64,000 bases of DNA from Monocercomonoides exilis PA203 (Eukaryota; Protista; Preaxostyla): assembly GCA_001643675.2 (NCBI GenBank), contig LSRY02000008.1, forward strand, positions 868,001 through 932,000. Direction: 5' to 3'. Every line of letters starts with the position of its first letter. Positions within the stretch are counted from its first letter, which is position 1. The notes under the pieces were generated by a model. It ran no database searches, had not been told where the DNA came from, and was given only the letters and a program-made list of their open reading frames with translations. Positions 23,989 through 57,282 of the stretch are shown here, one piece after another. The translations under genes and the position numbers were made by a program.

Positions 23989-25479
23989 AATAACAAACAT
24001 GTAAAACTTGCAATTTCTATTGATTCAATAATCCTTTTATTCAAAATCAAAATTTTTTTTCGACATTGAATCGTCATAGAAATAATTTCTGTTTTGAAAA
24101 TAAGTTAAAAGAAATTGAATCACACGAGAGATTGATCTATTCTACCGACTGACCTTTCGACAGACTGATCTTTGTCATTAGACTGATCTCGACAAAGATC
24201 TGTCGATAACCCATTTTTATAGCGTTTTTGGTTATTTTTCAGAAAATTATTTTTTATCAAAAAAAGTTGTTAATTATCAAATGAAATATGAAAATTATTT
24301 TTTTCTTCAAAAAAATCAATAGAAAAAGAGATATATTGAAATATCTTTAAAAATTACAAATAAAAAAGTTTAGAATCTGTCTTGTCGGTCGACTTGTCGA
24401 GGTGCTTTGTGACAAGTCGGCTTGTCTCAAAGGCCTACTCAAAACATCACATATAACGAAAACAAACAATTAACAAACGAAATATGCAAGAATTAAAAAT
24501 TGCAGTAAAATGTGCATATTCCGGTTCTTCTATTAATTTTGAATATTAAGTTCAACACAATTGAATGATAAATTGTGTAATCATATTATTTCAACAAACC
24601 AAAAAAAAAAAAAAAACTGACAAAAATACTCTGAATTTTTCTTCCAGCTGTGATTAGCAATTAATTCTTATTTGTTTGATGATTTTTTTAAAATGAAAAA
24701 TTGCTTTTGTGAAGTGATGTCTCTTTGAAAGAATAAATATTTTTCGTAAAAAAAATTCAAAAATGATTTCATGTTTTTCATCTTCTTATTGAGTCTGTTA
24801 ATTCATGATTCATGTTAATAACAATCAAATCAATGAAATCACTGTTCAAGAATGTTATCTTTCATTGAGGTTGTTGAAGATTTTCATTTGTTGATTATTA
24901 TTGGTGTTCATCACAACAATAGATGAATTGTGAATAGAATTTTTCTATTTGAATAGATTCAACTTATTTAAATGAACTGGGTTTTTCTTAAATGAAGTCA
25001 TGTTATTTTAAATGAGTGAAGTGACACTTGAATAAAGTGCGATACACTCAAATAAAGTTTTTTTGAAAAAATGGTAAACACTAATTATAAAATTTTTACG
25101 TTTTATATTTCACTTTATCAATAAAATAAATTAAAAAATCCAAAATAATTGTGATTTTTCAATATTCTCAAACATAATTTGAGACGTGTTAAAAGAAGAT
25201 TTTATTTGATAGAAACGACGTGAAATGAAAGAAAAAATGAATTTGTTCTCGTTTTTATATCCTGTTTTTTCTCATTAACAAAATATTTGATCATCACGTA
25301 ATTAAATATCTTAAATAAAAATTTGCTTCAATGAATGTTCATGGAGCGATTTATCACTGATATTTTCCGTAGTACTGAAGCGCGAAGCTGAATACATGGG
25401 TTGATGCAGCTTTCGATATCAACTTTCTATATTTACGGCTTATGAATCAATTATTTCATCAGATTTTTATTCAAAAAGC

Positions 25480-26400
25480 CACACTTGATTCTTCTTTAAT
25501 AAATCAGTATCTGCTTTCATCCACTGAGCGTCAGAAGAAATCCTTATCGTCACCATCCCAAACTCCTTCGGATCCTTTCTGCTGTTATCATTCACAATAT
25601 CTTTCTAATCTTCGGCTTCATTTTTTTCCTTCTTCCTCAAACAGCCAAAACAACAATGACTACAAGCAGTAATACAACAACCTCAATGCAAACAATCAAC
25701 TACCAATACGATTTCCCTTCTTTTCCTCCTTCAACAATCCTTTCATCCCCATTTGTTTTCGGCTCACTTCTCTTCTTCAGAACAAATGCATCAGTTGCAG
25801 ACAACCGCTTCCCAAACAAAATCATCACAAACACCTCTGTTTCATCCAAAGCCAATGAAATATTCTCTGATGGAACTCTTCCAATCACTTCCGTTTCTGA
25901 AACAAACCCATCTTCTTTAAAATGATATGTCTCAATCAGGTCTGTATCTCCAGCTGATAAAAACAGTCGGAATGACAAATCACATGGCAGAAGAAGCGCT
26001 CCATTGAATTGAATTTCAGTTCCACCTCCATTTTCGCTGGCAGAAGCCCCTTCCAGCTTGGGAATGAAGAAGGGCAATTCCCTTTCTCCTGCCATCCCTT
26101 CCAGGCTGCATCCATCATCCAGAATCCACAACGAAGAATTATCTTTCACCCCATCTCCTACCTTCAAGCACGAAATAGTCAGCGAAGCAGAATCGAAGCA
26201 GATGATATTATTCGGAGTAAACAATATAAAAAAAATGGATTGTGGTGAAAGAATTATCCTTTCTCAATCGTCACATTTCCAGCCAAGATCGACAATTCAC
26301 AAACGAAGAATTAGAAATTGAAGCTCCTTTGTTATAATTGCTGAATTTTTTTGATGGACAAGAGAATTATTCTGCACAAACAAATCTTCTAATCTTTAAG
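25480..26400 (-). pseudogene. C-terminal fragment of a large single-pass surface protein (cargo)
   Basis: 174-aa ORF ending EGGKEGKSYW*, followed in frame by LIVCIEVVVLLLVVIVVFGCLRKKEKNEAED*KDIVNDNSRKDPKEF: a TM segment plus cytoplasmic tail, with premature stops. Confidence 0.65.
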
Positions 26401-27801
26401 CTTCATCTTGAAAATGAGAAGTGAAGAAACAAAAGCTTCCAGCAAACAGATTTGTTCACACTCCAGCGAAAGAGCAGAACAGCATCAACAAAGCTATTTT
26501 TCTTTTGGTGTATCAACTACAACCTGAGAATGAGCAGTTATTCAAAAAAATCGATGTATTTAGAGAAATCAGCCATTCTCTCTAAGGAGAATTCGAATGA
26601 ACAGAAATGCAGCTGCACAAAATTACTGACAGCTTCATCTCTCTTCTCATTTTATTGTCAGCTCACATCCTTCTTCTCATCATATCTTCTCCGACAAAAC
26701 TTTTCAAAGTTCTGATCTCCAAAAACGGAACCTCATGAATCACACATCATTTTGAGGCCTATGAGAAATTGAAGCAAATTATGCCACAATTTCACATGAT
26801 CTGCCTTGAACATTTTCGCTGATCCGAATTCATCGACTTTTTCCAACAATAAGTTGATTCTTGAAATGGAATTTTGGAACTTCGTTATTACACCTTCTCC
26901 TTTGCAGCACATGAAGATGACCAGGAGCCTGTGAAAATAACCATTTTTTATGGAAAAAAGGACACAAGGGGAAAAAGAATGTGAAAAAACAATATAATTT
27001 CGAATGAGCTTCTGAAAATTTTGAAACAATTGAATAGACCTTAACTCACAAGGAAAACAATCTATGTATTTCACATTTGAGTATTGCTTTATTCGTAAAA
27101 CTGATATACGTTACGAATAATTAGAAAATTCGTTCAACGTGTTTTTAACAATTTTGAGCATTCGATATTCTGGATGCACCTCAATATTAATTTACTAATT
27201 TGTCTTTATTTTCAATTTGTCAGAAATGAATGAGTCTGGTGAGCTAAACTCAATCAACTTTACAAAAGCAATATGTGTTGAACTTTTATTTGACTTTTTG
27301 TTAAACTGATCATGTTTTTTTGGAGATTCTCTCAATATGATATCTTTTCAAGAAGATTTTAACAAATACTAATGATGTATCTCGATTTAAATGTTCTCTG
27401 GGAAAGTTGGAATCATTGTTCAGTGCTGATGTTTCATTTTCCCCATAATTTTGTAAGAATTTTATCTATTTCGAATAATGTCGTTATTGTCTGGCACAAG
27501 CTCAATTGCTTTCTTTGGAATTCCTAGAGATGATGAAGTTTCACACATTGGAAGGTTTTCATTTTGAATTTTTCGTATTGTTGACATTTGTACAAAAATA
27601 TGCAGGGAAAAGAATGTGGAATGTCCATCGTTTGATCAAAACGTTTTTAAATTTAATGCACACTAGAAAAATAAATCCTGTGAAAGTCTTTCCCAAAATG
27701 AAGATAATTCATCTCATCAACAAACTGTTTCATCAACATCAAATGTTCTGAATGTTGCTAATCATACAACACCATTTGTTAACAACGAAACAAGAGAACA
27801 T

Positions 27802-29386
27802 TTGAATTCAAAAATTCAAAAAACTTCAGATAGTCCTTCTATTAAAGAGTCGCCTTCAAAATATACTCTGAATTCAACAAAAATCAAAGAGAAAAGATAC
27901 AAAAAAATGAAGCAATCTGTTAATCTGCGGAATGAAAAGCCGAAGCGGAAACAGCCGGATTTTGACGAAATGCAGGATAGGAAAACAAAACAATTGGAAA
28001 AAATAGAAAAGATTGATATTAATGAAGATAAAGAGAAAAAAATAGAATCACTAGGATTTATCACTGATCATTATCTTCGTTTCACCTATGATGAGCATTT
28101 ACGTTTACCGAAAACAACAATTGTTGAACTTGTAAATTTGATAAAATCCATTTTGAATAGCGCACCGAAAAAAGGGCCTCCATCAACACTTTCACCACAT
28201 GATAAGCTTATAGTGTATCTTGAGTGGCTGTCCAGCAGGACGACCTTGGAGAGGATTTCCTCTTTAATGGGTATATCTCAATCAATGGCAAGCAATTGTT
28301 TGACTGATATACGTCCCGCATTGCTTTCTGCGTTGAATGAAATTTTTTCCACTCCACCTAGGCCTCCAACAATTCCCAACGAAGAATTTCCTAATGTTGC
28401 TTTGTTAGTCGATGCAACGACAATCAAAGTGCCATATCCCATTTCTACCACATTCACCGAAGGGAAAAAACTGTTTGATGCACATCATTCAGTTTACTGC
28501 ATCAAAAACGAAGTGGCGGTTTCATCTTGGAAACCTCACAAAGCCTTATTCGTTTCTGACGCGATTGAAGGAGGAAAACATGATGTTTTTCTGTTTCGAA
28601 AAGGAATGAAAAGATATGAGGAATATATGAAAAAAACCGATGAAGAAAGAATAAGGAATTATCATGATTTAAGGAATGATAGCTGGGTGATCATGGGAGA
28701 CAAAGGATATCAAGGACATTTCCCAAACATTCGATTGATCACTCCCATCAAAAAATGTTTTATCCAAGAATTGACTTCCGTAAAATTTTCATCAGAAATA
28801 GCCAAGCTTCCTTCTCCTCCTCGTTCTCCTTCTCCTCCTTCCTCTCCTCCTTCCTCTCCTTCTTTTACTTCTCCACAACAACTCCCTTCACTCCCTGCAC
28901 CTCCTCCGCTTCCTCTTATTCCTCAAACTGAATCGTATTCCACTTTCCCTGAATGCTCCCAAGCTTTCACCCAACTTCCTTCTGATTGTTTTCCTGAAAC
29001 AATGAAATCAACATCACAAGCCTTGTCACAACTTTCATTCATTGATTCTTCCATTTCATCATTAACAAAAAGCGCATCATCATCATCAACGACTGAATCC
29101 TCTAGCTCCATATTCGACCAACTCACCGAACAAGAATTGGATTCTCTGAGTATTGATGAATTCAACAAGAGCATTGCAAGATGCCGTATTCCTGTTGAAT
29201 GGTTTTTTCGGCCGGATGAAAAAGCTTTGGCTCAGACTTTCTGATACCTACTCAGGAGGCAGAGAAAACGTTGGAACAGATGCAAAAATAGCAAGTTGGT
29301 TGACTAATTTGGTTATTGACTATCACAGATTGGAAGATGATGATGGTAAATTTTATAAGAAAACAGAAGTGTTTGAGTGTTATTAA
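27802..29386 (+). CDS. DDE_Tnp_4 transposase with HTH; single frameshift near the C-terminus
   Basis: LSPHDKLIVYLEWL…ISSLMGISQS (HTH), LLVDATT, HHSVYCIKNE, GGKHD, IMGDKGY, RIPVEWFF/GRMKKLW. One extra T in the T6 run at 29203-29208. Confidence 0.85.
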
Positions 29387-30137
29387 GAAAATGAAAGAAA
29401 GAAAATAAGAGATATTAATACACATGCAAACACCGAAAGAAAAGCAATTCGAAAAACTTCATTTATGTAACAATTTTTTATCATTGGCTTTTGAAATATT
29501 TCGAAAACAAACGAAAATACAGGAGCACGATTTCCAACTCATATTTTTATGTACGACAATTGCATTTTTGTGTCAAATTGAACAAAGGAATGGAAATTTC
29601 ATTTATTTCTTGATGAGATTCATTTTTCTGTTGTTCTATTTCTATACCTCAAAAGATTAAGATAAAAAACATTCTTGTTTTCTTCGAATGATTTATTTTA
29701 ATTTCAAAGACACAAATGCTTCACTAATTTTATCATATTGCACAAAAGAAAAGAAAAGTCAAGAAAAGAAATAAACAATTTTAATTAATTGTTGAAGAAA
29801 TGAACAAATGATTTTTTATTATTCGCAAAAAGTTATTTGGCATCGAAAAATGAGATCTTGATTTTTATTTACAAAATAAATTATTTGACGAAAATAACAA
29901 AAATAATTTCCAAAACAATATTTTCAATATATAAATAATATTTGAATGATTTTGCAATCAACTAATTTTGTAATTTATTTGTTTATTTTTTCCAAAATTT
30001 CTCGAAGCTCAAATGAACTCAGTCTAACTCAAATGAACTCGGTTTATTCAAACAAACTCGATCTATTCGAACAAACATGAGTTCATTTGAATAAACCTAG
30101 TTTATTTGAATAAAAAAAATCTATTCAAAATTCATCT

Positions 30138-33100
30138 AATGAAAGATTTCTCATTGCACAAAATATTGATTCCATGATAAATCACTGTACCGATAAAAAC
30201 AATTCATTCTATGATGGAAAAAGAAGATAAACTTGTTGTTCACTTGATGAATGTGCTCCATAATAAAATAATGCCGAGGATGATTTGCCTGTTTTTCGCT
30301 TTGCTGGGGGCGCTGAGGGCTGCGGAGCGTGGGCAGGGGCAGGGGCAGCGGAACTACCTGCAACTGCGCGATGGGGAGCTGCCTCGTATGTGTGCGTTTT
30401 GGTTGGCGTCTTGCCGCGAAGTGGCGATGAAATGACTTTTGATGTTTTGTGTGATTTGTGTGATTTTTTTGGGTTGGGTGGGAAGAGTGGTACAACGTGA
30501 CGGTGCAGCAGGACAAGGGGCGGGAGTGCCTGGAGAGGGCGTTTTCGGGGTATGACTGCGGGAAGATGACGCTGCAGGAGAAGCTTCGGCTGACCATCAA
30601 GCTGCTGAACTGCTATGGGGACGAGATGGGTTTGGCTTTTCTGTTTTTTCTATTTCTTGGGGGTTTTTGGGATTTGGGGTGGGAATGATTGGGCGATTGC
30701 TGGCGGGGCTGTGATTTGCAGGGCTGAAGCCGTACCGGTGCGCAGACAGCTGGGACATTTCGGTGTGCATGAAGAAGCTGAACGACGAAGAGAAGTCGTC
30801 GATCCGGGACAAATCGCTGACGATAGGTTTGGGTCATCTTTGTGTTCTGTGCTGTAATTGTTTTGTTTTATTTGACTTTGTGACTTGTGGTTCATTGTGT
30901 GTTGGAGGCAGACAGTGTTTGCTATTCGTTCAAAAACGAGACGGTGATGCAGCGGATAAGCATGCTGGTGGATCGGGTGGTGGCGGGGAGCGAGGAGACG
31001 CTGGAGCAGCTGTACAGCCTTGTGGAGACGTCGCAGTCGGTTTTTGAAGCGACGAAGGAGTCGGTGGAGATGCAGGCGCAGCTTGCTGTGCAGCAGGAAG
31101 GGATGAAGGCGGAGATGAAGGGGATTGAGGAGGAGCACCAGAAGCAGAGGGAGCTGATCCAGAAGGGGTTTGGGGAGATTGGGGATGCGACTGGTTTGGT
31201 TCACAGCTGTATTTGATTGAAGAAAGTGAAATCAATGAAATTTATCTCTCTCTCTCTTTTTTTTGTTTTTTTCAATTTTCATTGTGAAAGAGGGGATTAA
31301 GGAGAAGATAAGTGAGTCGGTGAGGGAGACGAAGGAGCTGGGGGCGGTGCAGAGGGAGGTGTGTGAGGAGCAGAGGAGGTGGGCGGCGGGGATGAAGGAG
31401 CAGCTGTCGGGGGTGGCGGAGTCGGCGGGGGAGGTTGCGGAGTGGATGAAGGCGGCGGCGGCGGGGCAGGCGAAGATGGAGGCGGCGGCAGCAGCGATTG
31501 GGGCAGGGATAGGGGCGGTGGGGCAGATGCAGCGGGAGGCGGAGGAGGCGCTGGGGCGGATAGGGAGGGAGCAGGAGGGGATGAAAGGGGTGCAGGCAGA
31601 GACGCGGGAGGAGCAGAAGAGGATGAGGGCAGAGATGGAGATGGTTTGGGAGAGCTCATCAAATTCATTTTATTATCCTTTTTTATTCCTCTTTTATTTA
31701 TTTTTTGACAGTCGTTTGACAGCATAGCGCACCAGCACAGGAGCCTGCAGAGGCAGATGGAGGAGTCGGTGGAGCACTCGGAGCAGATCTTGGAGCAGCA
31801 GAGGCGGGCGGTGGCAGAGATGGAGGGGGTGATGGCTGTGCAGGGGAAGGCGTTTGAGGAGACGGTGAGGCAGCTGGTGGACATCCGGAGCGACACAACG
31901 GTGTGGGTGGTGAGGGTGGTGAGGATGGTGAGGATGGTGAGGGTGGGAATGCTATTATTTTTCTTCTATTTCTTTTTTTGTGGGAGAGAGAGAAAAAAAA
32001 CATAAAGAGTGAAAATGCTTTGTTTTCTTTGTCATTTTATTTCTCTTTTTCTCTTTTTTCTTTTTTCTTTTTCATTTCTTTTTGTTTTTGTTTTTGTGGG
32101 GGGAATGGAACATGGGAAGATGGTGACGGAGAGGCTGAGGCAGCAGAATGAATATCTTCGGACAGAGTTTTCGTCAGTGCGGGTGTGGATGCAGCGGATT
32201 CTGAGTGGGCAGTCATCGATTTTTGGTTTGAGGCAAAAGGAAAAGAAAAGAAAATTCAAAAATATTTTATTTATTTTATTTTTGTATGTTTTGATGATTT
32301 GTGCATTCGCAGCTGACTTGAGTGGGCTGCACAGCATTGCGTTTTATGTGGCTTGTCTGCTGTTCTTCCAGCTGGTGACGTCGCTTCCGCACACAAAAGA
32401 GGCACGAATATGGATATTTTATTGTTTGCCTGTGAAGAAATGAGAGGAAAGAGAGAGAAAGAGAGAGAAAGAGAGAGGAAGAGACTGCTTTCCATTCATG
32501 TTCATTTTTATTGTATTTTTCTGTTCTTCTTCTTCTCATTCGATTTCGTTCTTCTTCTCTTTTGTGATTCATCTTAAACAATGACGAAATATGGAATGGA
32601 GTGTGGGTGGTGTTTTTTGTGGGGGAGCGAGGGATTTTGTGGGTTGTTGGCAGGAGCGGGGCAGCGGCAGAGGAGATGAGGCGGTTTGCAGGCAGCTGGC
32701 ACATGCTGTTTGTTTGTTTGTGTGTGTGTGCTGTGGGGCATGCGGTGTGGACATACAAAGACTACGAGGCGCTGAACAACACCCTTCTGAAAGAGAACTG
32801 GAAGAAAGCGAGAGAACTGACGAATGCGGTTGGTGATGCTTGGAATATATTTCATCTTCTTCAATAATGTCTTCATCTTCATCTTCATCTTTCTTTTTTC
32901 TTTTTTATTTGTTTTTGTTTGTATTCAGTTCCGATTCTATGCAGATGAAGTGAGCCGGCTGAAGAGGCAGGAAGAGGATGGGCAGCGAAGAGGAAATGGG
33001 CAGTGTGGGGGAAAGAGAAGGAAGAAAGGGGAGAAAGAAGGGAGTGTGTGGATTGGGAGGAGTTTTGATTCATTTGGGTTTCCATCAGCAAAAGAGAAGA

Positions 33101-33729
33101 GAACAACATTTGATGAACACACATCATCATCATCATCATCTTCTTCTTCTTCTTCTCCTTCTCCTTCTCCTCCTCTTCCCCCTCATCCCTATCTGCATTT
33201 TTATCCACTTCGCTCTTCTTCTCACTTCAGCCAATTCGACGAGGATTCATTTGCTTTTGAGAGAAACACGAGGAGAGCTGCTTCTGTTTGAGAAAGAGAA
33301 AGAGAAAGACAAACAATTTATTTATTTCAATTTAATAGAAATGGAAATGGAAATAAACATTCAATGAAATATCAGGAGAGAAAGAAAAAGAAAAAAATGA
33401 AGAAATCAGATAATTTTGCCTGTTTGCAGTTTTTGTGTTGTTTTTATGTTTGCTGCTTGGACAAACGCATTCAAACCTCATTTCATCCATTCTCAAATGT
33501 TTATTGCTTGTTTTGTTAATTTTTGCATTTTTGGAAGAGAAAGTTGCATTGTTTTGTTTTTGAAGGATTGCAGCAATTATAAAAAAGATGAAACAAACGA
33601 TTTCGAACAGAACATTCCACAAACAAGAAGAAGCTGTTTGTTTTTGAATGAGAAGAAATTGTTTGCTGTTTGGGGTTGTTCAAATGAAGTGTTTTATTCT
33701 TGTTGCATTTTCTTGTTCATGAAATGATT
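30138..33729 (+). repeat. Left arm of large inverted duplication (plus displaced outer part ~24725-24920)
   Basis: Reverse complement of 39075-42660; the ORF track is mirror-symmetric. Confidence 0.97.
30271..33291 (+). CDS. GEX1: GEX1/KAR5/Brambleberry-family nuclear membrane fusion protein, copy 1 (multi-exon)
   Basis: Signal peptide MPRMICLFFALLGALRA. Spliced exons (30271-30385, 30486-30629, 30722-30826, 30912-…) give the Cys-rich domain CLERAFSGYDCGKMTLQEKLRLTIKLLNCY…PYRCADSWDISVCMKKL…IDSVCYSFKNE. This is followed by a long coiled coil, TM segments (SIAFYVACLLFFQLVTSLPHTKEARIWIFY; LFVCLCVCAVGHAVWTYKDY) and a cytoplasmic tail. Confidence 0.88.
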
Positions 33730-33959
33730 GAGATGCAAAAAAACTGAAATGTTCAAAAAAAAAATTACTATTTTATTTATTTGATAAAAAAAGAAAAGAA
33801 AAATAGAATGCCAATAAATGCACAACTAACATCCCCTGAACGAAATCTTCTTTTCTTCTGTTTCAGAAAGAAAAGAAAAGAAAAGGTAATAAAAAATGAA
33901 TATTTTCTTTTAAATTGAATAAATGCAAAAAGGGTAATTCCTCCTCCTCTTTTTTCTTT

Positions 33960-36900
33960 CTATTCTTCTTTTTCTTTTTCTTTTTCTTTTTCTTTTTCTT
34001 TTTCTTTTTCTTTTTCTTTCTCTTTCTCCTCTCCATTCCCAAACAACAAACGCAGTTGTTGTTTTCTCCAATCAAGTTCTTCTTCTTCCTCCTCTTCCTC
34101 TCCTCTTCCTCCTCCTCTTCCTTCTGTATTCACATAACTTCCATCTTCACCACTGCTACTGCTGCTACTACTGCTTCTTCCATCGTTATTTCCTCCTTCT
34201 TCTCCTTCCTCTTTTTCTCCATCTTCAATATCTTCTCCTTCTTCTCCTCTCTCCTCTCCCATTCCCCTCCTCCTCCTCCCTCTCCCCTTCTTCCCATTCG
34301 CCCTGTTCTTCATCCCAAACACACACAGAACAAACCCCAATCCAAATGGAATGAAATAGTTCTCAGAAACACTCCGGACAAACGAAAGCGCCAAAAACGG
34401 CTCAAAAAAGACACGAACACGCTGCCTCGCTTCTTCACAGCTGCACTTCAGCACAAACACGAAGTACTTCGCATAATAATATGGCTTGTTTTCGGGTGTA
34501 TAACAGCCTGCCAGCTCGAGCAGCCTGAGAATTGCCTCTTTCTTCTTGTAGCGCACGACTTCCGGTGAACGAGGAGAATGAGAAGAAGAAGAGGAAGAAG
34601 AAGAGGAAGAAGAAACAGAAGGATGATTAGAACTCAACCGATGAGGAACGAGAACAGTCAGAAATTCGCCGAGCACCTCGCGTGTTGTGTTCTCGTTCAC
34701 CAATTCTTTCGACTCGTCTTCGATTTTCTCTGCCAATTTCCCTTCAAAATGCTCTCTTCTGATCACATCCTGCCCAAACACCACGTCGGCCTCTCCATCT
34801 GCCACCATCTCAACCAGCCGCAGCAGACTCAGGCTCCTCACAAGCTTCTCTGCTTTCTCTGCTTCCCCATTTTCCTTCATGACAATTGAGAAGACAGAAA
34901 GAAGGCGCATTCTTCTGCCCCTTCTGAACGGATTGAAATGGCAGAAGAATCGCTTAATCTTTGAAGTGAATGAATTTGAAGAAGAAGAAGATGAAGAAGA
35001 TGCAAATGATGAAGTGATTTTACCAGAATTATCAGCATCAACAGAACAAGCTCCCAAACCCAACTGAACTGCCTTCAATTCCTTCTGATCTTCTTCTTCT
35101 TCTTCTTCTTCTTCTTCTTCTCTTCTTCCTCCTCTTCTCCCTCCTTCTCTTCCACCATCTCCAAACACATCCCACACCATCCTCAGCACCTCGTCGTCGA
35201 TTCCCTCTGGCCAGCTCTTCCACGGCTGCAGTCCTTTCCCTATCTTCTCCCACAAACTCTTCGGCTTCTCAAACATTCTGTACACCTGCACCACTTCCTC
35301 CTCCAGCGGCCTCACTTCTCCAAAACTGAACTCTTCTGCCACATCTGCGTTGGAGTAGAACGGATGGTACGAAAAGGAACGGAGCTCTGGCGAATGGTGA
35401 AGATGCCGCTTTGAGTGGGGGCTGGGAAAGAGAATGTGCTTGGGAGAAGAAGAAGAGGAGGAGGAGAAGGAAGAAGAGGAAGAAGAGTGAGAAGAAGAAG
35501 AAGAAGAAGATGTTGTTGTTGAAGATGAAGATGAAGTTACATTTGTTTTTTCTGTAGTTGAATTCGTTTTCTTCACTTTGTTGCTATCTTCCCTTCTCCC
35601 TTCTTCCTCAGTGCTGTTTGTGGAAACTTGAACAAAAATCGATTTGACTTCGTCTCCAAACAGAAACTGTCTTTGCAGCTGTGTCTTCACATTGGGATGA
35701 GAAGAGCTTGCAATCTCATACAGCTGCAGCGCATCAGAAACATACGAATCAATCAAAATTTTCATTTTTCTCATCTTCTCTTCTTCTTCCCTTCTCTTTT
35801 TTGCTTCCATTCTCAACTCATTTATTGAATTATCCTTCAACTTCTTCTCTTCTTTCTCTTTCTCCATCTCTTTCTCCATCTCTTCCATCTCCTTCCTCAT
35901 CTCCCTTGCTTCTCTCCTCATCTCATCTGCCAACAATACCATCGCCACTCGATGTCCCTCACACGCCGCTTGCAGAAGCAGCTGCCCCGCAGACAACGAC
36001 CCCACACACGGAAACCCCAACGGTGAATCCAATGGGAAGAGAGAAGAAGAAGAAGAAGAAGAAGAAGATAGCGATGAAGAAGAAGTTGAAGAAGTTGAAG
36101 AGAAAGAGATAGAGTCTGAAGAATGAAATGGGCTTTCATTTTCGTTCTGATTTTTGTTTCCATTCAAATTTTGATGTTCACTTTGTTTCCCCTCAACTCC
36201 ATTCATTGTCATTTCCCTCTTCTCCTCTTTCTCCCTCAAATCTCTTTCTTCTCCTTCTCTTTCTCTTTCTCTTTCTCCTTCCCCTTCTCCTCCCCCTTCT
36301 GTTAGTAACATCTGCTTCAGCAGTTGTCTGTCTGTGTTGAGTCTGCTGTTGAGTGAAGACAGGCAAATGTCTCCAGCAAGTGCCATCGCATCAGCCATGC
36401 CAATGTCAGCGAGTGAGAGCAGAGAGAAGAACGAGGTCCATTCTTTGGCCTGTTGGAGGGTGTATTGCTTGTGGAGGATGGAAGAAGAGGAAGAAGAGAA
36501 AGAAGAAGAAGAAGAAGAAGAAGAAGAAGAAGAAGAAGAAGAAGAAGAAGAACTTGTAGAAGAAGAGTCATAAGAATCCCTCACTGAATCAGCCTCCCCC
36601 ATCTCTTTCTGATTTCTCTCTCTTTCAAATGCCTCAATATACTCCTTCTGTGCGAGGATGTGGTCAACAACCATCCCATCAGCCACAATGGATGATGCAG
36701 CATTAACCGATTCACACAGAAGAGCGTGATAAGCAGGCGACATCTTCAGCAGGCTCATCAGCTGTGCCATCGCCTGTGAATAAAGCACACTCGACTGAAG
36801 AGACTCAGAAAGAGTGCAGTATGGATGGCTCCTCAGTGCTTCCTGCACAGAAAAGGAGGAAGAAGAAGAGGAAGATAAGTTATTTCTTCCATTTTTATTG

Positions 36901-38126
36901 ATTCTGCCTTCTTCTTTTTCTTCTTCTTCTTTTCCTTCTCTCTTGCTTCCCCTTTGCCACACAGCTGCTCCTTCCTCTCTGAGCGACAGGCGCATCTGCT
37001 CCTCAAACAGCTGCTTCGTCACAAACACATTCGCCAGCCAGTATTTCGACCAGACAGAGCCAAAATAGTTGAATGCATTCTCTTCAATGTACTCACACGC
37101 CAGCTGAAGTGCGGCCTGCAGCAGCTCCACATCTGAAAGCTCTGTGTCTTCTGTGGTTGGGCCTTTGAAGTCTTCTTTGTTTTCTTCTTTGCTTTCTTCT
37201 TTCTCTTTCTTTTTCTCTTTCTCTTTACCTTTCTTCTCTTTGACATTATTTGTCTGTTCATTTGCTTGTCTCTGCTCCTTTGTCACATGCTGTGTAACAG
37301 AGTTGAAAGTGGTTGTTCTGTTTTCCTTTCCCTCTGCCGTGTCAAAAAGGCTGCTGTTCTCCTTCAACAAGGAGGGATAGCAGTATAAAAGCACTCCCAG
37401 CATAAAGTTCTTCTTCGCCGGAAAAAGCGTCTCTGTCTGCAGCATCGCAAACACTCGCTTCACAGCCGGCGGTGGCGCCTCGTCCAAAATGCTTCCGTCT
37501 TCCCACTTCGCAAAGAACACCGCTGCCCCGTCAGGCACCAGCCACCCGAAGCCTTCTCTCCACAGCTCTGCCAGCGCAATCATGTCCTGCTTCGGAAAGT
37601 CATCTTCTGTGCCCTCTTTCGCAAAGTGCGCGGTGGCTCGCCCGAAGTCGATGCGGTCGCTGCCGATGCCGTAGAGATGGTACATTCCGAAGAACCGGTT
37701 GCGTTTCATGCTGCCCAAATAGTCTTTCTCTTCGGTTGCTCGAGAGAATGAAGGTTCCACTCCAGCTGTCTGTATCGCAGTGAAAAATGCATCTGCACCG
37801 CTTTTCTTCTCACTGTCATAAAATTTGTAGTATGCTTGCTTGTTCTTTTTCAAAGCCGATCGAAATTTGGCAGACTTGTTCGCGATAAGTTGAAAATCAA
37901 TGCAACTGTCAACTTCCATGGATTGATCAGCATCACAAGGTGGAATAACTCCCAGCCAGGAATAAAATGATGTGTATGTTGGAACAAAGGCCATGTTCAA
38001 AAGTGTAGAACGCGCCAAGTTCCTCATATATAAAAATGAAAATAAAAGATCATGATCATTATTTCTAATCAAAAAGGGATTATGCAAAAGATGAGAGGCA
38101 AAAGAAAAAGAAGCTTCAGCGTTCAT
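33960..38126 (-). CDS. Large membrane protein with divergent SEL1-like repeats (HRD3/SEL1L-like?); probable extra 5' exons up to ~38450
   Basis: 1388-aa open frame with motifs GMYHLYGIGSDRIDFGRATAHF, DMIALAELWREGFG, ADIGMADAMALAGD, AACEGHRVAMVLLAD. It has a C-terminal hydrophobic segment (YFIPFGLGFVLCVFGM) and poly-Ser/Glu inserts. Confidence 0.55.
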   Translation of the reverse strand: MNAEASFSFASHLLHNPFLIRNNDHDLLFSFLYMRNLARSTLLNMAFVPTYTSFYSWLGVIPPCDADQSMEVDSCIDFQLIANKSAKFRSALKKNKQAYYKFYDSEKKSGADAFFTAIQTAGVEPSFSRATEEKDYLGSMKRNRFFGMYHLYGIGSDRIDFGRATAHFAKEGTEDDFPKQDMIALAELWREGFGWLVPDGAAVFFAKWEDGSILDEAPPPAVKRVFAMLQTETLFPAKKNFMLGVLLYCYPSLLKENSSLFDTAEGKENRTTTFNSVTQHVTKEQRQANEQTNNVKEKKGKEKEKKKEKEESKEENKEDFKGPTTEDTELSDVELLQAALQLACEYIEENAFNYFGSVWSKYWLANVFVTKQLFEEQMRLSLREEGAAVWQRGSKREGKEEEEKEEGRINKNGRNNLSSSSSSSFSVQEALRSHPYCTLSESLQSSVLYSQAMAQLMSLLKMSPAYHALLCESVNAASSIVADGMVVDHILAQKEYIEAFERERNQKEMGEADSVRDSYDSSSTSSSSSSSSSSSSSSSSSSFSSSSSSILHKQYTLQQAKEWTSFFSLLSLADIGMADAMALAGDICLSSLNSRLNTDRQLLKQMLLTEGGGEGEGEREREREGEERDLREKEEKREMTMNGVEGKQSEHQNLNGNKNQNENESPFHSSDSISFSSTSSTSSSSLSSSSSSSSSLFPLDSPLGFPCVGSLSAGQLLLQAACEGHRVAMVLLADEMRREAREMRKEMEEMEKEMEKEKEEKKLKDNSINELRMEAKKRREEEEKMRKMKILIDSYVSDALQLYEIASSSHPNVKTQLQRQFLFGDEVKSIFVQVSTNSTEEEGRREDSNKVKKTNSTTEKTNVTSSSSSTTTSSSSSSSHSSSSSSFSSSSSSSPKHILFPSPHSKRHLHHSPELRSFSYHPFYSNADVAEEFSFGEVRPLEEEVVQVYRMFEKPKSLWEKIGKGLQPWKSWPEGIDDEVLRMVWDVFGDGGREGGRRGGRREEEEEEEEEEDQKELKAVQLGLGACSVDADNSGKITSSFASSSSSSSSNSFTSKIKRFFCHFNPFRRGRRMRLLSVFSIVMKENGEAEKAEKLVRSLSLLRLVEMVADGEADVVFGQDVIRREHFEGKLAEKIEDESKELVNENTTREVLGEFLTVLVPHRLSSNHPSVSSSSSSSSSSSHSPRSPEVVRYKKKEAILRLLELAGCYTPENKPYYYAKYFVFVLKCSCEEARQRVRVFFEPFLALSFVRSVSENYFIPFGLGFVLCVFGMKNRANGKKGRGRRRRGMGEERGEEGEDIEDGEKEEGEEGGNNDGRSSSSSSSSGEDGSYVNTEGRGGGRGEEEEEEEELDWRKQQLRLLFGNGEEKEKEKEKEKEKEKEKEKEKEE

Positions 38127-39074
38127 TGAAGAAGCAAATACATTAAATCCTAGTGCCTTTAATATATATAAAAAAAGATGATTTTTAAATAGTTAGAAAA
38201 TTTCATTCAATTTATGTTTTTTGAAAATATTGAAATTTTAACAAACATTCATGGGATTATAAGTATAATGCCTCTGTGAAAATGGTAGTATTCTATCATG
38301 TTCAATTCCATGCAAAAATGCCAATGCTCCAAATTGCTCAGAATATCCTTTATCCAACTTTTTATTTAGAACTTTCAAAACATTTAATTGATTGGAAATT
38401 GGGGTCAACTTTACGTCATTTTATAAATAAAAGCACAGAGGAGCAAATTGTATAATGATTTATATCACAAAATACAATTATTAAAATATTCTTAAAACAA
38501 AGCAAACGATGAAAGGAAAATGTCGAAATTGAAAATCAAATTTCGAGGATTTTCCAACTAAAAGTGTCTCCGATTCTATTTTTTGAAAAAAGAAAAAAAC
38601 AATAAAAGCGGAGAAAAACATGATTCAGAAAGATTATTATTATTTATTTTGATAAATAATGATCATGCTATAATGGTTGCAAGTTTATTCAAGTATGAAA
38701 ACAGTTTAATTGAAATGCATATTTTTGTTTATGAAAGGGCTTGAATCAAATGAAATTATTTGCAAAATAGATATATCATCATTGGATTGAAACTTTGTTT
38801 TTCAAAGAACTTTAATCAAGCGAATAATTTTTATTAGGGAATTTTAAAAATGTTCACGCAAAATTTGAAAATAGAGTCAAACAAGAATCATTCAACTTCA
38901 ATCATTATGTTTCAATCAAAATTTGCAAATAAATATTGTGACTTTAATGTTTATCTTCATTTCTAAGTCACAACGCATGTTCAGATCGTGAGCACATTTC
39001 TTTTCCACACAAAACAAAGAGTTTATTTTTCATGTTGAACCCTCTTTTTGTGATTTATTTATTATTTTTTGATT

Positions 39075-42000
39075 AATCATTTCATGACAAGAAAATGCAA
39101 CAAGAATAAATCACTTCATTTGAACAACCCCAAACAGCAAACAATTTCTTCTCATTCAAAAACAAACAGCTTCTTCTTGTTTGTGGAATGTTCTGTTCGA
39201 AATCGTTTGTTTCATCTTTTTTATAATTGCTGCAATCCTTCAAAAACAAAACAATGCAACTTTCTCTTCCAAAAATGCAAAAATTAACAAAACAAGCAAT
39301 AAACATTTGAGAATGGATGAAATGAGGTTTGAATGCGTTTGTCCAAGCAGCAAACATAAAAACAACACAAAAACTGCAAACAGGCAAAATTATCTGATTT
39401 CTTCATTTTTTTCTTTTTCTTTCTCTCCTGATATTTCATTGAATGTTTATTTCCATTTCCATTTCTATTAAATTGAAATAAATAAATTGTTTGTCTTTCT
39501 CTTTCTCTTTCTCAAACAGAAGCAGCTCTCCTCGTGTTTCTCTCAAAAGCAAATGAATCCTCGTCGAATTGGCTGAAGTGAGAAGAAGAGCGAAGTGGAT
39601 AAAAATGCAGATAGGGATGAGGGGGAAGAGGAGGAGAAGGAGAAGGAGAAGAAGAAGAAGAAGATGATGATGATGATGATGTGTGTTCATCAAATGTTGT
39701 TCTCTTCTCTTTTGCTGATGGAAACCCAAATGAATCAAAACTCCTCCCAATCCACACACTCCCTTCTTTCTCCCCTTTCTTCCTTCTCTTTCCCCCACAC
39801 TGCCCATTTCCTCTTCGCTGCCCATCCTCTTCCTGCCTCTTCAGCCGGCTCACTTCATCTGCATAGAATCGGAACTGAATACAAACAAAAACAAATAAAA
39901 AAGAAAAAAGAAAGATGAAGATGAAGATGAAGACATTATTGAAGAAGATGAAATATATTCCAAGCATCACCAACCGCATTCGTCAGTTCTCTCGCTTTCT
40001 TCCAGTTCTCTTTCAGAAGGGTGTTGTTCAGCGCCTCGTAGTCTTTGTATGTCCACACCGCATGCCCCACAGCACACACACACAAACAAACAAACAGCAT
40101 GTGCCAGCTGCCTGCAAACCGCCTCATCTCCTCTGCCGCTGCCCCGCTCCTGCCAACAACCCACAAAATCCCTCGCTCCCCCACAAAAAACACCACCCAC
40201 ACTCCATTCCATATTTCGTCATTGTTTAAGATGAATCACAAAAGAGAAGAAGAACGAAATCGAATGAGAAGAAGAAGAACAGAAAAATACAATAAAAATG
40301 AACATGAATGGAAAGCAGTCTCTTCCTCTCTCTTTCTCTCTCTTTCTCTCTCTTTCCTCTCATTTCTTCACAGGCAAACAATAAAATATCCATATTCGTG
40401 CCTCTTTTGTGTGCGGAAGCGACGTCACCAGCTGGAAGAACAGCAGACAAGCCACATAAAACGCAATGCTGTGCAGCCCACTCAAGTCAGCTGCGAATGC
40501 ACAAATCATCAAAACATACAAAAATAAAATAAATAAAATATTTTTGAATTTTCTTTTCTTTTCCTTTTGCCTCAAACCAAAAATCGATGACTGCCCACTC
40601 AGAATCCGCTGCATCCACACCCGCACTGACGAAAACTCTGTCCGAAGATATTCATTCTGCTGCCTCAGCCTCTCCGTCACCATCTTCCCATGTTCCATTC
40701 CCCCCACAAAAACAAAAACAAAAAGAAATGAAAAAGAAAAAGAAAAAGAGAAAAAGAGAAATAAAATGACAAAGAAAACAAAGCATTTTCACTCTTTATG
40801 TTTTTTTTCTCTCTCTCCCACAAAAAAAGAAATAGAAGAAAAATAATAGCATTCCCACCCTCACCATCCTCACCATCCTCACCACCCTCACCACCCACAC
40901 CGTTGTGTCGCTCCGGATGTCCACCAGCTGCCTCACCGTCTCCTCAAACGCCTTCCCCTGCACAGCCATCACCCCCTCCATCTCTGCCACCGCCCGCCTC
41001 TGCTGCTCCAAGATCTGCTCCGAGTGCTCCACCGACTCCTCCATCTGCCTCTGCAGGCTCCTGTGCTGGTGCGCTATGCTGTCAAACGACTGTCAAAAAA
41101 TAAATAAAAGAGGAATAAAAAAGGATAATAAAATGAATTTGATGAGCTCTCCCAAACCATCTCCATCTCTGCCCGCATCCTCTTCTGCTCCTCCCGCGTC
41201 TCTGCCTGCACCCCTTTCATCCCCTCCTGCTCCCTCCCTATCCGCCCCAGCGCCTCCTCCGCCTCCCGCTGCATCTGCCCCACTGCCCCTATCCCCGCCC
41301 CAATCGCTGCTGCTGCTGCCTCCATCTTCGCCTGCCCCGCCGCCGCCGCCTTCATCCACTCCGCAACCTCCCCCGCCGACTCCGCCACCCCCGACAGCTG
41401 CTCCTTCATCCCCGCCGCCCACCTCCTCTGCTCCTCACACACCTCCCTCTGCACCGCCCCCAGCTCCTTCGTCTCCCTCACCGACTCACTTATCTTCTCC
41501 TTAATCCCCTCTTTCACAATGAAAATTGAAAAAAACAAAAAAAAGAGAGAGAGAGATAAATTTCATTGATTTCACTTTCTTCAATCAAATACAGCTGTGA
41601 ACCAAACCAGTCGCATCCCCAATCTCCCCAAACCCCTTCTGGATCAGCTCCCTCTGCTTCTGGTGCTCCTCCTCAATCCCCTTCATCTCCGCCTTCATCC
41701 CTTCCTGCTGCACAGCAAGCTGCGCCTGCATCTCCACCGACTCCTTCGTCGCTTCAAAAACCGACTGCGACGTCTCCACAAGGCTGTACAGCTGCTCCAG
41801 CGTCTCCTCGCTCCCCGCCACCACCCGATCCACCAGCATGCTTATCCGCTGCATCACCGTCTCGTTTTTGAACGAATAGCAAACACTGTCTGCCTCCAAC
41901 ACACAATGAACCACAAGTCACAAAGTCAAATAAAACAAAACAATTACAGCACAGAACACAAAGATGACCCAAACCTATCGTCAGCGATTTGTCTCGGATC

Positions 42001-42855
42001 GACGACTTCTCTTCGTCATTCAGCTTCTTCATGCACACCGAAATGTCCCAGCTGTCTGCGCACCGGTACGGCTTCAGCCCTGCAAATCACGACCCCACCA
42101 ACAATCGCCCAATCATTCCCACCCCAAATCCCAAAAACCCCCAAGAAATGGAAAAAAGAAAAGCCAAACCCATCTCGTCCCCATAGCAGTTCAGCAGCTT
42201 GATGGTCAGCCGAAGCTTCTCCTGCAGCGTCATCTTCCCGCAGTCATACCCCGAAAACGCCCTCTCCAGGCACTCCCGCCCCTTGTCCTGCTGCACCGTC
42301 ACGTTGTACCACTCTTCCCACCCAACCCAAAAAAATCACACAAATCACACAAAACATCAAAAGTCATTTCATCGCCACTTCGCGGCAAGACGCCAACCAA
42401 AACGCACACATACGAGGCAGCTCCCCATCGCGCAGTTGCAGGTAGTTCCGCTGCCCCTGCCCCTGCCCACGCTCCGCAGCCCTCAGCGCCCCCAGCAAAG
42501 CGAAAAACAAGCAAATCATTCTCGGCATTATTTTATTATGGAGCACATTCATCAAGTGAACAACAAGTTTATCTTCTTTTTCCATCATAGAATGAATTGT
42601 TTTTATCGGTACAGTGGTTCATCGTGAAATCAATATTTTGTGCAACGTGAAATCTTTCATGGCTGTGATGAAAACCAAAAATAATTAAAAAAAGAAAAAC
42701 TTCATCAACCTCAATGAAAGATAATATTCTTGAACAATGATTTCATTAACTTGATAGTTATGAACATGAATCATGAATTAACAGACTCAATAAGAAGATT
42801 GAAAAACTTGAAATGATTTTTGATTTTTTTATTAAAAGTTTGAAAATTTCTTCAA
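39075..42855 (-). repeat. Right arm of large inverted duplication
   Basis: 39075-42660 mirrors 30138-33729; 42660-~42855 mirrors ~24725-24920 with more mismatches. Confidence 0.95.
39512..42528 (-). CDS. GEX1: GEX1/KAR5-family protein, copy 2 (multi-exon)
   Basis: Mirror copy of 30271-33291; exon-spanning ORF translations are identical (e.g. 41074-41538 vs 31263-31727). Confidence 0.88.
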
Positions 42856-43303: not shown

Positions 43304-43345
43304 GATCTTGTCCGGTATTATGTATTATGTCCTATATTTTATGCA

Positions 43346-43592
43346 ATATGTCAAAATTTTTTTGAAAAGTTCATTTTGTTTAATTTTCAAATAAAACAAA
43401 TATTTCAAATTTCAATCAAATTTCTGTTCCCACTCACGAAACTTTTCTCGAATGGAAACAATAACATTGTCATTATTTTGTTTTCATAACATCGAAATTA
43501 GGTGAGTGGAAACATAAATTTGATTGAAATTAGAAATTTTTGTTTTATTTGCAAACAAAACAAAAGGAACTTTTCATAAAAATTTAGACATG
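43346..43592. repeat. Foldback/MITE-like inverted repeat (~90-bp arms)
   Basis: …CAAATAAAACAAATATTTCAAATTTCAATCAAATTTCTGTTCCCACTCAC pairs with GTGAGTGGAAACATAAATTTGATTGAAATTAGAAATTTTTGTTTTATTTG…. Confidence 0.75.
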
Positions 43593-44101
43593 TGGATTAA
43601 AATTTTAAATCAATTTGTGAGAAAGATACTAACACATGTGTGATTTTTTTTGATATCATAAAAAAAGATCAAAAATTGAAAAAATAAATCTATAGTGGTA
43701 TTTATTGATCAAAGAGTTAATTTGTTTTTTTGCAAGTATTTAGCTTTTATTTCTGTCACATATATTTGTAAAATTTATAAGAACAAAAAAACATACCTTT
43801 TTTTCATTAAAAAGAGTTTTTTGATCAAGTTTCAAAAAAAAAAAGAAAAATCAATCTTTAAAAGGAAAATAGATATTTCTAAACTGAAAAAACAAAACAT
43901 TGAAAAGAAAAAATTTAAAATAAGAACGAAAAAACGATAAGAAAACAAAATTATTGAAACCAATTTACAAATAATAGTTATTTCTCTTTTTTCTTTTCGT
44001 CTTTGAACAGCTAACAAATTTCCTTTCCTTTAATTCGGTTCAATTGCTTCATCAACCGTTCAACGAAATCGTGGATAATAAGAAAAGCTGAGTTCAATAG
44101 C

Positions 44102-54910: not shown

Positions 54911-57282
54911 TTTTTCTTCTTCTTCTTCTTCTTATTTTTCTTCTTCTTCCTCTTCGTCATCCTCTTCATCCACCACCACCATCATCACCTCCTCCTCCAC
55001 CTCCAAACAGCCCATCCACACCTGCCAGATCCAAAGCAACGACTCTCTCGCCACCTCTTCCCATTTCCTGCCTTCTTCTCTCCTCTCTCCAGACATCGTA
55101 GAGATCTGCGGCAGCGACGGCGATGGCACAAAATGGACCTTCACTCAGCTTCTGCTCTTCCTGCGCTTCGTCCTCAAAGTGGATGTGGTGTGTCTGAGCA
55201 CCGCATCTTCGACACCCTCATCAAAGCCATCCTGTCTACCCTGAGAAGCCTCTCTGACACATCCTCTCTGCTCCACTGCTTCCCCAGCATGGGATTTGAG
55301 CTGTATGGAGTGGATATCCTGTTGGACGACACACTGAGGCCGTGGATGATTGAGGTGAACATATCTCACTCGCTGCAGTCGTCTTCGTTGTTGGACAACA
55401 GAGTGAAGAAGGCAATGCTGGTTGACTTGTTCAATTTGGTCGGATTAACACCAAGTTCGGAGGAGGGAGAGGTGCTTGTACTGACAATGACGATGAAGAC
55501 GAAGGAGATCAATGATGGAGAGGGAGAAGGAGAAGGAGGAGAAGGGAAAAATGAGAAGGAGAAGGAGAAAGGAAAGGAAGAAGAAAGAAAAGGAGGAATT
55601 AGAGTGGACCAGTTTGATCACATTCTGACAGGGCAGATTGAAGCGAATGAGAATGGAGAAACAGACATGAAGCAAAAACTGATGCAAAGGAGCATGTTGC
55701 AAGCAGGGAAGAAGAAGAAGAAAAAGAAGAAGTCAGCAGGACAAGGCAAAAGCGGAGGAGGAGGAGATAACGATGATGATGACCCTGTTTCAGAAGACAT
55801 TGATTTCGGGGATGATCAGTTTGGGTGTGAATCTCCCTTTTCGAAGATGCCTGTGTGTCAGCCATCGTCTCTGGTGCAACTGAGTGTGAAGGCAGTTAAA
55901 ATGACGGTGGTGACAGCAGACAGAACACAACTGAACAGCCTTTCAGAAACATTCGAGTTTGCAACATTGAATCATTCACTGGAAGGAAAGAAAGGAAGAA
56001 AGGAAGAAGATGTTGAAATGAAAGATGATGCAAATCAGAATGATTTGGGTGATGAGAAGAATGCAGAAATGACTGACAAAACAGCGTCTGGCCTGCCAAT
56101 TTTCTCGCAGAACAAAATTTATGCTGTCAAAAGGGGAACAAACAAAGACGGATGCAACAGTTTATTCCAAACATCTCCTGCAAATTCACCTGCTCTCAAT
56201 GCAACAGATGAACAACAATCAAATATTTCCTTTTCTTATCCATCTTCTTCTTCTTCTTCTTCTCACTTTTTTTCTTCTTCAACAGAACAAACATAAATTT
56301 CTTCAAAGAATATCTAATTCACTCCAGCATCAATATCTCAATCAATCAAGCTTGTGGAGTGAAGTTGGGCAGAGAAATGAACATCTTTTTTGAGTAGATG
56401 GAGGATTTGATCTCAGAAAGAGTGAAGCTGGTTGACAGAGAACAAAGATAAAACTGCAAAGACCAACATTCAATGGAAGAACAAGAATTGACAGAAAATT
56501 CATCTCCTCGTTCTTCGCTGGTGTGCCATTCTTCTGTTTCTGCATCGTCTTTTGGGGGAGAAGGAAGGCTCAACGAACTGAGCTATGATGTTTCAGGCAC
56601 TCGATACGACATTTTGGACTTGGATGACTTTGAAGAAGAAAGGGCAGAAGAAGAGCGGGAGAGGAAAGAGAGAGGAGGAATGATCGTCCCCACAATCGCT
56701 ATTCATCCGTATTTCCACAAAAACAAACAGATTTATCAAGCAGCAAATGCTCAAACAACAACATTTGAAATGACTTTAAATGCATCTTCTTTCTTTTCAT
56801 CATCATCAAGTTCTGCTTCTGTTTTTGCAAACTCAACAGTAACATCTTTATCGACTTCTTCAGCTGCCTCTGTGAAAACTTCCTTTGACGCCAGTGAGCC
56901 ATGCCTCAGTTCAATCACACAAACAATTCCTTATCCTCTCTCTTCTTCCTCTCTGCTTTCCATCTCTCGACTCCACCCTTGTCTTTGCTGCCTCTTTCTC
57001 AACTCCCTCACTCATCAAAACGCGCGCCTTCTTTTCATAACACACCCACACACTCACCCATTCACTCTGATGTGTTCTTCTCCTTCGTTAACACTGCTTT
57101 TCCATCCATCGTTCTTCTGTTATGCGGATGCCCTTTTGTTTGAGGTGGAGTTCTTCAGGCAGATGCTGGGAAGAAAAGAAAAAGAGGTCAATAGGAAGAA
57201 AATGAAGAATATGAACGAGAATGAACAAATGAATGAAAGAGGAAGAGAAAGAGGGAAAAGAATTGAACATGAGAAATATTAA
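52780..57282 (+). pseudogene. Tubulin polyglutamylase TTLL4-like gene, degenerate
   Basis: FELYGVDILLDDTLRPWMIEVNISHSLQSSSLLDNRVKKAMLVDLFNLVG is the TTL-domain C-terminal signature (usual EVNxSPSL has P>H here). The upstream part has no continuous frame; the 5' limit is approximate. Confidence 0.7.
54763..54950. repeat. Compound microsatellite (CAT)n(CTT)n(CCT)n(CTT)n
   Basis: Directly visible. Confidence 0.95.

Follow-up and report, generated by a model that had tools for sequence, protein, structure and literature searches.

In a 64,000-nucleotide stretch of the Monocercomonoides exilis PA203 genome (the window; contig LSRY02000008.1, positions 868,001 to 932,000), two GEX1/KAR5-like genes occupy the near-identical inverted arms of a palindrome. 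We consider this arrangement best explained, with a probability of roughly 0.78, as an ordinary inverted segmental duplication that was homogenized by gene conversion and that has no demonstrated role in sex or switching.

Structure of the palindrome

A repeat search placed the inverted arms at 30139-33716 and 39087-42660, and pairwise alignment extends them inward to 33729 and 39075, leaving a unique spacer at exactly 33730-39074, as the initial annotation had given it. Over about 3.59 kb the aligned arms are about 99.3% identical, differing by 22 substitutions and three short indels; inverted repeats of such length and identity cannot have arisen by chance. Arms of more than 99% identity around a unique spacer, which is 5.3 kb long here, are a feature of ampliconic palindromes. 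The two ends of the spacer have no similarity to each other, and the contigs covering it are of single-copy depth. No transposable element was found in a comparison of the inner arm junctions of this palindrome. The earlier description of a palindrome with 3.6-kb arms, each holding a complete intron-containing gene, is thus upheld, the gene being an intact 10-exon open reading frame (ORF) in both arms.

The arms also run 170 to 183 bp farther outward than first noted, as 24747-24915 aligns with 42834-42664 at 89.5% identity over 171 columns. The right arm (39075-42834, minus strand) is uninterrupted, and the left arm consists of a main part (30139-33729, plus strand) and an outermost block (24747-24929, plus strand) that was severed by the insertion of a 5.2-kb Harbinger/PIF-type transposon (24930-30138, plus strand). 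This element has terminal inverted repeats (TAGATGAATT.../...AATTCATCTA) and is flanked by AAT at each end, and the corresponding site near 42660 in the right arm is empty; the transposon is an interruption of the left arm and lies outside the duplicated unit. It sits upstream of the left gene copy and ends 73 bp before the first ATG. A 480-amino-acid (aa) ORF within the element (27802-29244) has a weak match to DDE_Tnp_4 in Pfam (E = 4.7e-5), and the transposon ends are high-copy sequences, with contig depths of 2000 to 2900.

Two copies rather than an assembly artefact

The assembly is reported to have been built from long reads, and the paper on the ONT assembly gives SRR15678500-SRR15678502 as its archived raw DNA and RNA reads. 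As assemblers of long reads sometimes make false inverted duplications, a single GEX1-like gene might have been assembled as an inverted pair from two haplotypes or from a fold-back chimeric long read. We regard this as very improbable. Both arm versions are present in Logan DNA contigs of public runs from 2016 and from 2022, although all the DNA runs examined derive from a single sample, which may be the assembled one. The unitig of shared arm sequence ends at 33691, one base short of the first inner difference, and the assembly graph forks there (33691/33692 at k = 31). In X1 the shared arm sequence reaches 186-214x, versus 72-88x for flank and spacer contigs (k-mer depth, not copy number), and the same trend is repeated in X2 and X3; the resulting depth of about 2.4 times that of the flanks is likewise a ratio of contig k-mer depths rather than a copy number and is supportive only. 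The presence of both versions in contigs, the fork, and the 2.4-fold depth together speak against both the collapse of a single copy and the misassembly of haplotypes. Moreover, none of the four junction flanks is related to another, and the two arm versions therefore cannot be alleles; the 5.2-kb transposon is present in one arm and its site is empty in the other; and the 22 substitutions follow a synonymous-only pattern in the exons. Given the junctions, the transposon, and the depth, both the haplotype and the fold-back readings were rejected.

Gene models, expression, and selection

Each arm contains a complete ORF of 2055 nt in 10 exons, encoding 684 aa, with GT..AG introns throughout. 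The left copy (30211-33291, plus strand), for which we built a frame-consistent model supported by RNA contigs, comprises exons 1 to 5 at 30211-30385, 30486-30629, 30722-30826, 30912-31193, and 31291-31643 and exons 6 to 10 at 31712-31900, 32120-32225, 32313-32423, 32602-32828, and 32929-33291. The right copy (39512-42588, minus strand) matches this model, with exons 1 to 5 at 42588-42414, 42313-42170, 42079-41975, 41889-41608, and 41510-41158 and exons 6 to 10 at 41089-40901, 40683-40578, 40490-40380, 40201-39975, and 39874-39512. The gene lies wholly within the arm, with about 250 bp of arm sequence upstream and 440 bp downstream. The ATG at 30271 may be the true start, in which case the signal peptide would be N-terminal. 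The spliced 684-aa model was assembled from the window sequence and used to examine reading frames, cysteine count, hydropathy, periodicity, and the classes of difference between copies, as well as in a tblastn search against the window.

A single spliced RNA contig spans exons 6 to 10 and supports introns 6 to 9, including the joints 31900>32120 and 32423>32602, and a second RNA contig covers exon 4. These transcripts, which come from an ordinary RNA library (a metatranscriptome run), are spliced, and as the RNA contigs show both arm alleles at 30783 and 30807, both GEX1-like copies appear to be transcribed. The GC content of the window is 36.4%, compared with 37.4% published for M. exilis, and the introns of the gene average 114 nt, compared with 119-124 nt published; their GC content of 34.6% is higher than the published 25-27.6%.

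All nine exon differences between the copies are synonymous, with no amino acid changes, and the two arms encode identical 684-aa proteins (dS of about 0.02). Such an outcome would have a probability of about 1e-6 to 5e-5 under neutrality, and the ratio of nine synonymous to zero nonsynonymous differences shows purifying selection against amino acid changes.

Relationship to the GEX1/KAR5/Brambleberry family

The published definition of the family comprises a signal sequence (SS), a six-cysteine cysteine-rich domain (CRD), coiled coils, and three transmembrane segments (TMs), and conservation within it is essentially confined to the CRD. The cysteine, hydropathy, and periodicity profiles of the 684-aa protein agree with the CRD, coiled-coil, and TM layout of GEX1/KAR5 type that the initial annotation had recognized. 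A hydrophobic stretch, MPRMICLFFALLGALRAAE (residues 21-39; Kyte-Doolittle peak at residue 20), is a predicted N-terminal signal sequence. Exactly six cysteines (C73, C83, C101, C113, C122, and C145) fall within 73 residues of the N-terminal region, and their intervals of 10/18/12/9/23 compare with 12/23/14/11/25 in yeast Kar5p (C56/68/91/105/116/141), all five running in parallel (r = 0.98). Residues 141 to 476, approximately, are proline-free and have a strong 3.5-residue hydrophobic periodicity, predicting a coiled-coil-like helix of about 330 residues, and hydropathy peaks near residues 455-477, 484-504, and 520-538 are the three predicted TMs, three C-terminal TMs being the number in GEX1-type members. 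Taken together, these features predict a member of the nuclear-envelope-fusion family that is anchored by its signal sequence, faces the lumen, and has six cysteines, a coiled coil, and three membrane passes.

Sequence searches at the exon level returned no family match. When pieces of the ORF and then the single exons were compared with Pfam, the CRD being spread across three of these exons, neither Tht1 nor any other family was found, only weak helical or coiled-coil matches. A HMMER search of 1.84 billion representatives with exon 4 gave one spurious coiled-coil match and no self-match; exon 2 gave TPR-like noise at 0.84 in the ESM Atlas and no family match; exons 2 and 4 matched only designed helical proteins in the PDB by sequence; and exon 4 found nothing among metagenome loci. 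Since neither exon 4 nor the ORF in the spacer (see below) matched itself, the M. exilis proteome seems to be absent from the protein libraries. No link from the gene to the published identifiers MONOS_1395, 16183, 16630, and 16849 was found in the papers and supplements.

As an alternative, the gene might encode a secreted or membrane protein with a coiled coil that is unrelated to GEX1/KAR5 and has the same layout by chance; combinations of coiled coils and TMs are common, and the exon-level searches were without a sequence-based match. We nevertheless consider it unlikely, given the six cysteines with Kar5p-parallel spacing in so short an N-terminal domain, the three C-terminal TMs, the known restriction of family conservation to the CRD, and the published HMM surveys, which report four Gex1 genes in M. 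exilis. Thus, the protein shares with GEX1/KAR5/Brambleberry members a signal sequence, a domain of six cysteines spaced much as in Kar5p, a long coiled coil, and three C-terminal TMs, but differs from them in being encoded by an inverted gene pair, in lacking a sequence or HMM match in the exon-level searches, and in having transcripts in an ordinary RNA library from an organism without any observed sexual process.

Gene conversion and the history of the duplication

From the outside to the inside of the arms, identity rises through 89.5, 95.0, 98.8, 99.4, 99.75, and 99.94%. The innermost 1.6 kb is 99.94% identical, whereas the transposon-isolated outer block, at 89.5%, differs sharply from the rest of the arm (Fisher P = 1e-14). 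Gene conversion between the arms can reasonably be inferred from this gradient, which fits such a process but does not by itself demonstrate it; the gradient could also have come from chance or from a small number of nested conversion tracts.

In our best reading, the locus is a real inverted segmental duplication: a unit of about 3.75 kb, with one complete GEX1/KAR5-family gene, is present twice, and the two copies lie convergently to the left and right of the 5.3-kb unique spacer, which bears an unrelated orphan gene. Recurrent conversion between the arms would then hold the genic part near-identical, with purifying selection clearing amino acid changes from both copies. In the same reading, a later Harbinger-type insertion upstream of the left copy isolated the outermost 170 bp, which then drifted to its present 89.5% identity.

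The spacer gene and the question of a sex locus

The spacer carries a 1388-aa ORF (33960-38126, minus strand) with low-complexity runs of Ser and Glu, with RNA contigs at 34294-34999. Neither a family nor a recognizable mating-type-like domain was found for it in Pfam, no homologue (nor a self-match) was found in the protein libraries, and it had no match in the PDB; an AlphaFold (AF2) single-sequence model had a pLDDT of 43, too poor for a fold search. The spacer gene is an orphan encoding a low-complexity protein and is unrelated to the genes in the arms.

The locus had been proposed as an undescribed sex-associated locus and as a substrate for flip/flop switching, and neither proposal is supported. 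Four Gex1 gene models in M. exilis, along with multiple copies in several other protists, already appear in a published table, so that the presence of more than one copy is not new. As for switching, the arm proteins are identical and the spacer gene is without a mating-type-like domain; rather than two different cell-type loci that inversion could swap, the palindrome holds the same protein-coding gene twice around a single orphan gene. Since the arm genes lie whole within the arms, together with their upstream sequence, a flip of the spacer would be mirror-equivalent, leaving nothing to switch. Therefore, it is highly unlikely that flip/flop of the spacer alters sexual state or that the palindrome specifically protects a fertility gene, even though inverted arms of this length and about 99% identity are capable of supporting inversion, the layout of the gene places it in a karyogamy family, and the identity gradient may be counted as a sign of arm interaction. 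Besides the identical proteins and the lack of a recognizable domain in the spacer gene, the occurrence of multiple Gex1 copies in several protists speaks against such a role, as do the transcription of the gene in an ordinary RNA library and the symmetry of the locus, by which a flip keeps the local context of each gene unchanged within about 3.7 kb. A role for the palindrome in determining sex or in switching is not supported.

We find it distinctly unlikely, too, that the palindrome is a maintained device in which frequent conversion from the inner arm ends, perhaps with inversion of the spacer, preserves two working copies of a karyogamy gene in a lineage in which sex has not been seen. 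If that were true, transcription under ordinary culture conditions would suggest cryptic nuclear fusion, or else a nonsexual fusion of nuclear membranes such as that of Brambleberry in karyomere fusion.

Comparison with known systems and implications

Sex-chromosome ampliconic palindromes share with this locus the near-identical inverted arms, the unique spacer, the presence of an intact gene in both arms, and possible traces of conversion between the arms, accompanied by purifying selection. Their arms, however, measure between about 9 kb and more than 1 Mb, compared with 3.7 kb and a single gene per arm here, and identity along the M. exilis arms changes steeply instead of being uniform; further, no sex chromosome or nonrecombining region is known in this organism. 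The flip/flop mating-type switching of methylotrophic yeasts likewise involves inverted repeats around an invertible segment, but inversion in those yeasts swaps the positions of two different MAT loci with respect to a silencing region, whereas here the repeated genes are identical and a flip is symmetric in its local context.

With multicopy Gex1 already published, the palindrome as an ordinary duplication opens no new question. The transposon-isolated outer block beside a putatively homogenized inner arm would be a minor natural example of heterology restricting gene conversion. What is gained for the organism is a checked gene model for each of the two karyogamy-family copies in a protist without observed sex, and the combination of purifying selection on both copies and splicing in culture lends modest extra support to the presence of a functional nuclear-fusion toolkit in oxymonads.

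Palindrome structure and the transposon in its left arm

The initial annotation described inverted arms around a unique spacer, and this arrangement was borne out by both a repeat search of the window and gapped alignment. Three abutting inverted pairs from the repeat search sum to arms at 30139-33716 and 39087-42660, and gapped alignment carries the identity to 33729 on the left (+) and 39075 on the right (-), past which both sides are unrelated; the spacer limits originally given, 33730-39074, are therefore correct. Over ~3.59 kb, the arms differ by 22 substitutions and three short indels (~99.3% identity). The only other inverted pairs of at least 150 nt in the 64-kb window were transposon terminal repeats and a low-complexity match. 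Additional outer homology (24747-24915 versus 42834-42664; 89.5% identity) makes the arms longer than first reported, so that the palindrome is confirmed and slightly extended outward.

In the left arm, the outer block is separated from the remainder by a 5.2-kb Harbinger/PIF-type element (24930-30138) with terminal inverted repeats TAGATGAATT.../...AATTCATCTA and AAT flanking either end. Its 480-aa open reading frame (ORF; 27802-29244) has a weak DDE_Tnp_4 match, and the uninterrupted site is seen in the right arm. The ends of this element are high copy in the DNA runs (depth, 2,000 to 2,900, versus about 80). A second, better-preserved Harbinger-type transposase ORF lies at 22400-23380 (DDE_Tnp_4, E = 6e-21), and 177-nt inverted repeats (80% identity; 12644-12820 and 17121-17297), 4.3 kb apart, form the termini of a further transposon-like element. 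A hairpin at 43336-43603 (126-nt arms, 81% complementary; 16-nt loop) lies outside the palindrome, ~500 bp beyond the right arm, and is similar to MITE-like fold-back elements.

Two genuine copies

Read evidence consisted of Logan contigs only, from three DNA runs of one sample (X1, X2, and X3) and one metatranscriptome run. Both arm versions are present in DNA contigs at 30279, 30642-43, 30651, 30700-30710, 30783, and 30807. In X1, a shared-arm contig (33189-33691; depth, 204) stops one base short of the first inner difference (33692), and the next contig (33662-33950; depth, 82) begins 30 bases ahead of that position and enters the spacer; this break is the k = 31 fork signature of a two-copy repeat meeting unique sequence. 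Identical arm contigs reached 186 to 214x in X1, versus 72 to 88x for the left flank and 79 to 82x for the spacer, with the trend repeated in X2 and X3, although contig depth does not equal copy number and these values are taken as supportive only. Depth aside, no two of the four junction flanks are related, and the transposon is present in one arm only; the inverted pair is therefore very unlikely to be an artefact assembled from two alleles of one locus or from a fold-back read.

Gene models and transcription

Each arm carries one gene (left, 30211..33291, +; right, 39512..42588, -) with ten exons, frame-consistent GT..AG splicing, and a 2,055-nt ORF encoding 684 aa; in a tblastn search of the joined model against the window, the only matches were the exons of these two genes. 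A 704-nt RNA contig takes in the final 39 nt of exon 6, continues across exons 7 to 9, and reaches exon 10, thus spanning introns 6 to 9, with joints such as 31900>32120 and 32423>32602, both GT..AG; exon 4 is covered by a separate RNA contig. Both alleles at 30783 and 30807 occur among RNA contigs (15.6 of 25.1), which suggests that both copies are transcribed, with DNA carry-over possible for the exon containing these sites. The first ATG of the left gene follows the left-arm transposon at a distance of 73 bp; as left-copy alleles persist in RNA contigs, the insertion may not silence this gene. Window GC content (36.4%) and mean intron length (114 nt) agree with the values published for Monocercomonoides exilis (37.4% and 119 to 124 nt); intron GC (34.6%) fits less well, being higher than published (25 to 27.6%).

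Probable GEX1/KAR5 membership

Protein features were derived from hydropathy, cysteine positions, and periodicity of the spliced model. A hydrophobic, signal-like stretch (residues 21 to 39) would lie at the N terminus were translation to begin at the 30271 ATG. It is followed by six cysteines (73, 83, 101, 113, 122, and 145), a proline-free region (~141 to 476) in which hydrophobicity recurs strongly with a 3.5-residue period, three hydrophobic segments (~455 to 477, 484 to 504, and 520 to 538), and a Ser/Pro-rich tail. As published, the family is defined by a signal sequence, a Cys-rich domain (CRD) with six cysteines, coiled coils, and transmembrane domains numbering two in Kar5/Bmb or three in GEX1; of these parts, only the CRD is conserved. 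In yeast Kar5p, six cysteines are conserved (C56, C68, C91, C105, C116, and C141), and the intervals between them, 12/23/14/11/25, parallel those of our protein, 10/18/12/9/23 (r = 0.98 over five intervals).

The GEX1 identity initially proposed thus fits in layout and cysteine spacing, but exon-level searches gave no sequence or profile match: no family member was returned by an exon-by-exon Pfam search or by single-exon queries of 1.84 billion protein representatives, the ESM Atlas, and PDB, and a single-exon query found no metagenome loci. The CRD coding sequence is divided among exons 2 to 4. Because neither exon 4 nor the spacer gene produced a self-hit, the Monocercomonoides exilis proteome seems to be absent from the searched protein libraries. 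We consider membership, on the basis of layout and cysteine spacing in lieu of a sequence match, well supported.

Purifying selection and proposed conversion between arms

All nine exon differences between the arms are synonymous, and the two proteins are therefore identical (P of about 1e-6 under neutrality, or 5e-5 with transitions only; dS of about 0.02). Arm identity climbs steadily from the outer to the inner end: 89.5% in the transposon-isolated block, 95.0% at 30139-30299, 98.8% at 30300-30899, 99.4% at 30900-31699, 99.75% at 31700-32099, and 99.94% at 32100-33729 (outer block versus remaining arm, Fisher P = 1e-14). We infer arm-to-arm conversion as the simplest reading of this gradient. 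The duplication would then predate the age implied by the 1 to 2% neutral divergence of the genic part, with repeated conversion evening out the arms, its tracts favoring the inner end over the outer, and the transposon-severed outer block having presumably evaded it. Of the 22 substitutions between the arms, 6 are crowded into the 32 bp adjoining the insertion point (30151-30182), suggesting that conversion tracts seldom extend to the edge of the interrupted homology.

Biological interpretation of the locus

The arms could physically mediate spacer inversion, as the suggested flip/flop switching would entail. However, the proteins are identical, each gene sits entirely within its own arm, upstream sequence included, and the near-identity of the arms means that flipping would leave the spacer in mirror-equivalent surroundings for at least 3.7 kb on either side. 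A flip offers no obvious switchable product or context, and switching is unsupported.

The idea of a sex-associated locus fared similarly. The spacer gene (33960-38126, -) has a 1,388-aa ORF with Ser/Glu runs and RNA contigs over it; protein-library, Pfam, and PDB searches and an AF2 model gave no homologue, recognizable domain or family, or confident fold, and we take it for an orphan protein of low complexity. Transposons and genes of low complexity populate the flanks, together with an ORF (55133-56296) whose product bears a tubulin-tyrosine ligase family domain (E = 3e-13) and which is probably a single exon from a TTL-like gene. None of these contents suggests a mating-type region.

A published survey lists four M. 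exilis Gex1 gene models (MONOS_1395, 16183, 16630, and 16849), along with five in Giardia muris and three each in Trichomonas vaginalis and Bigelowiella natans, and states that a sexual process has never been observed in metamonads; the literature gave no link between our two genes and the four M. exilis identifiers. The GEX1-like pair is a fresh instance of two known things, namely, a lineage-specific duplicate within a known family and a probably gene-converting inverted duplication.
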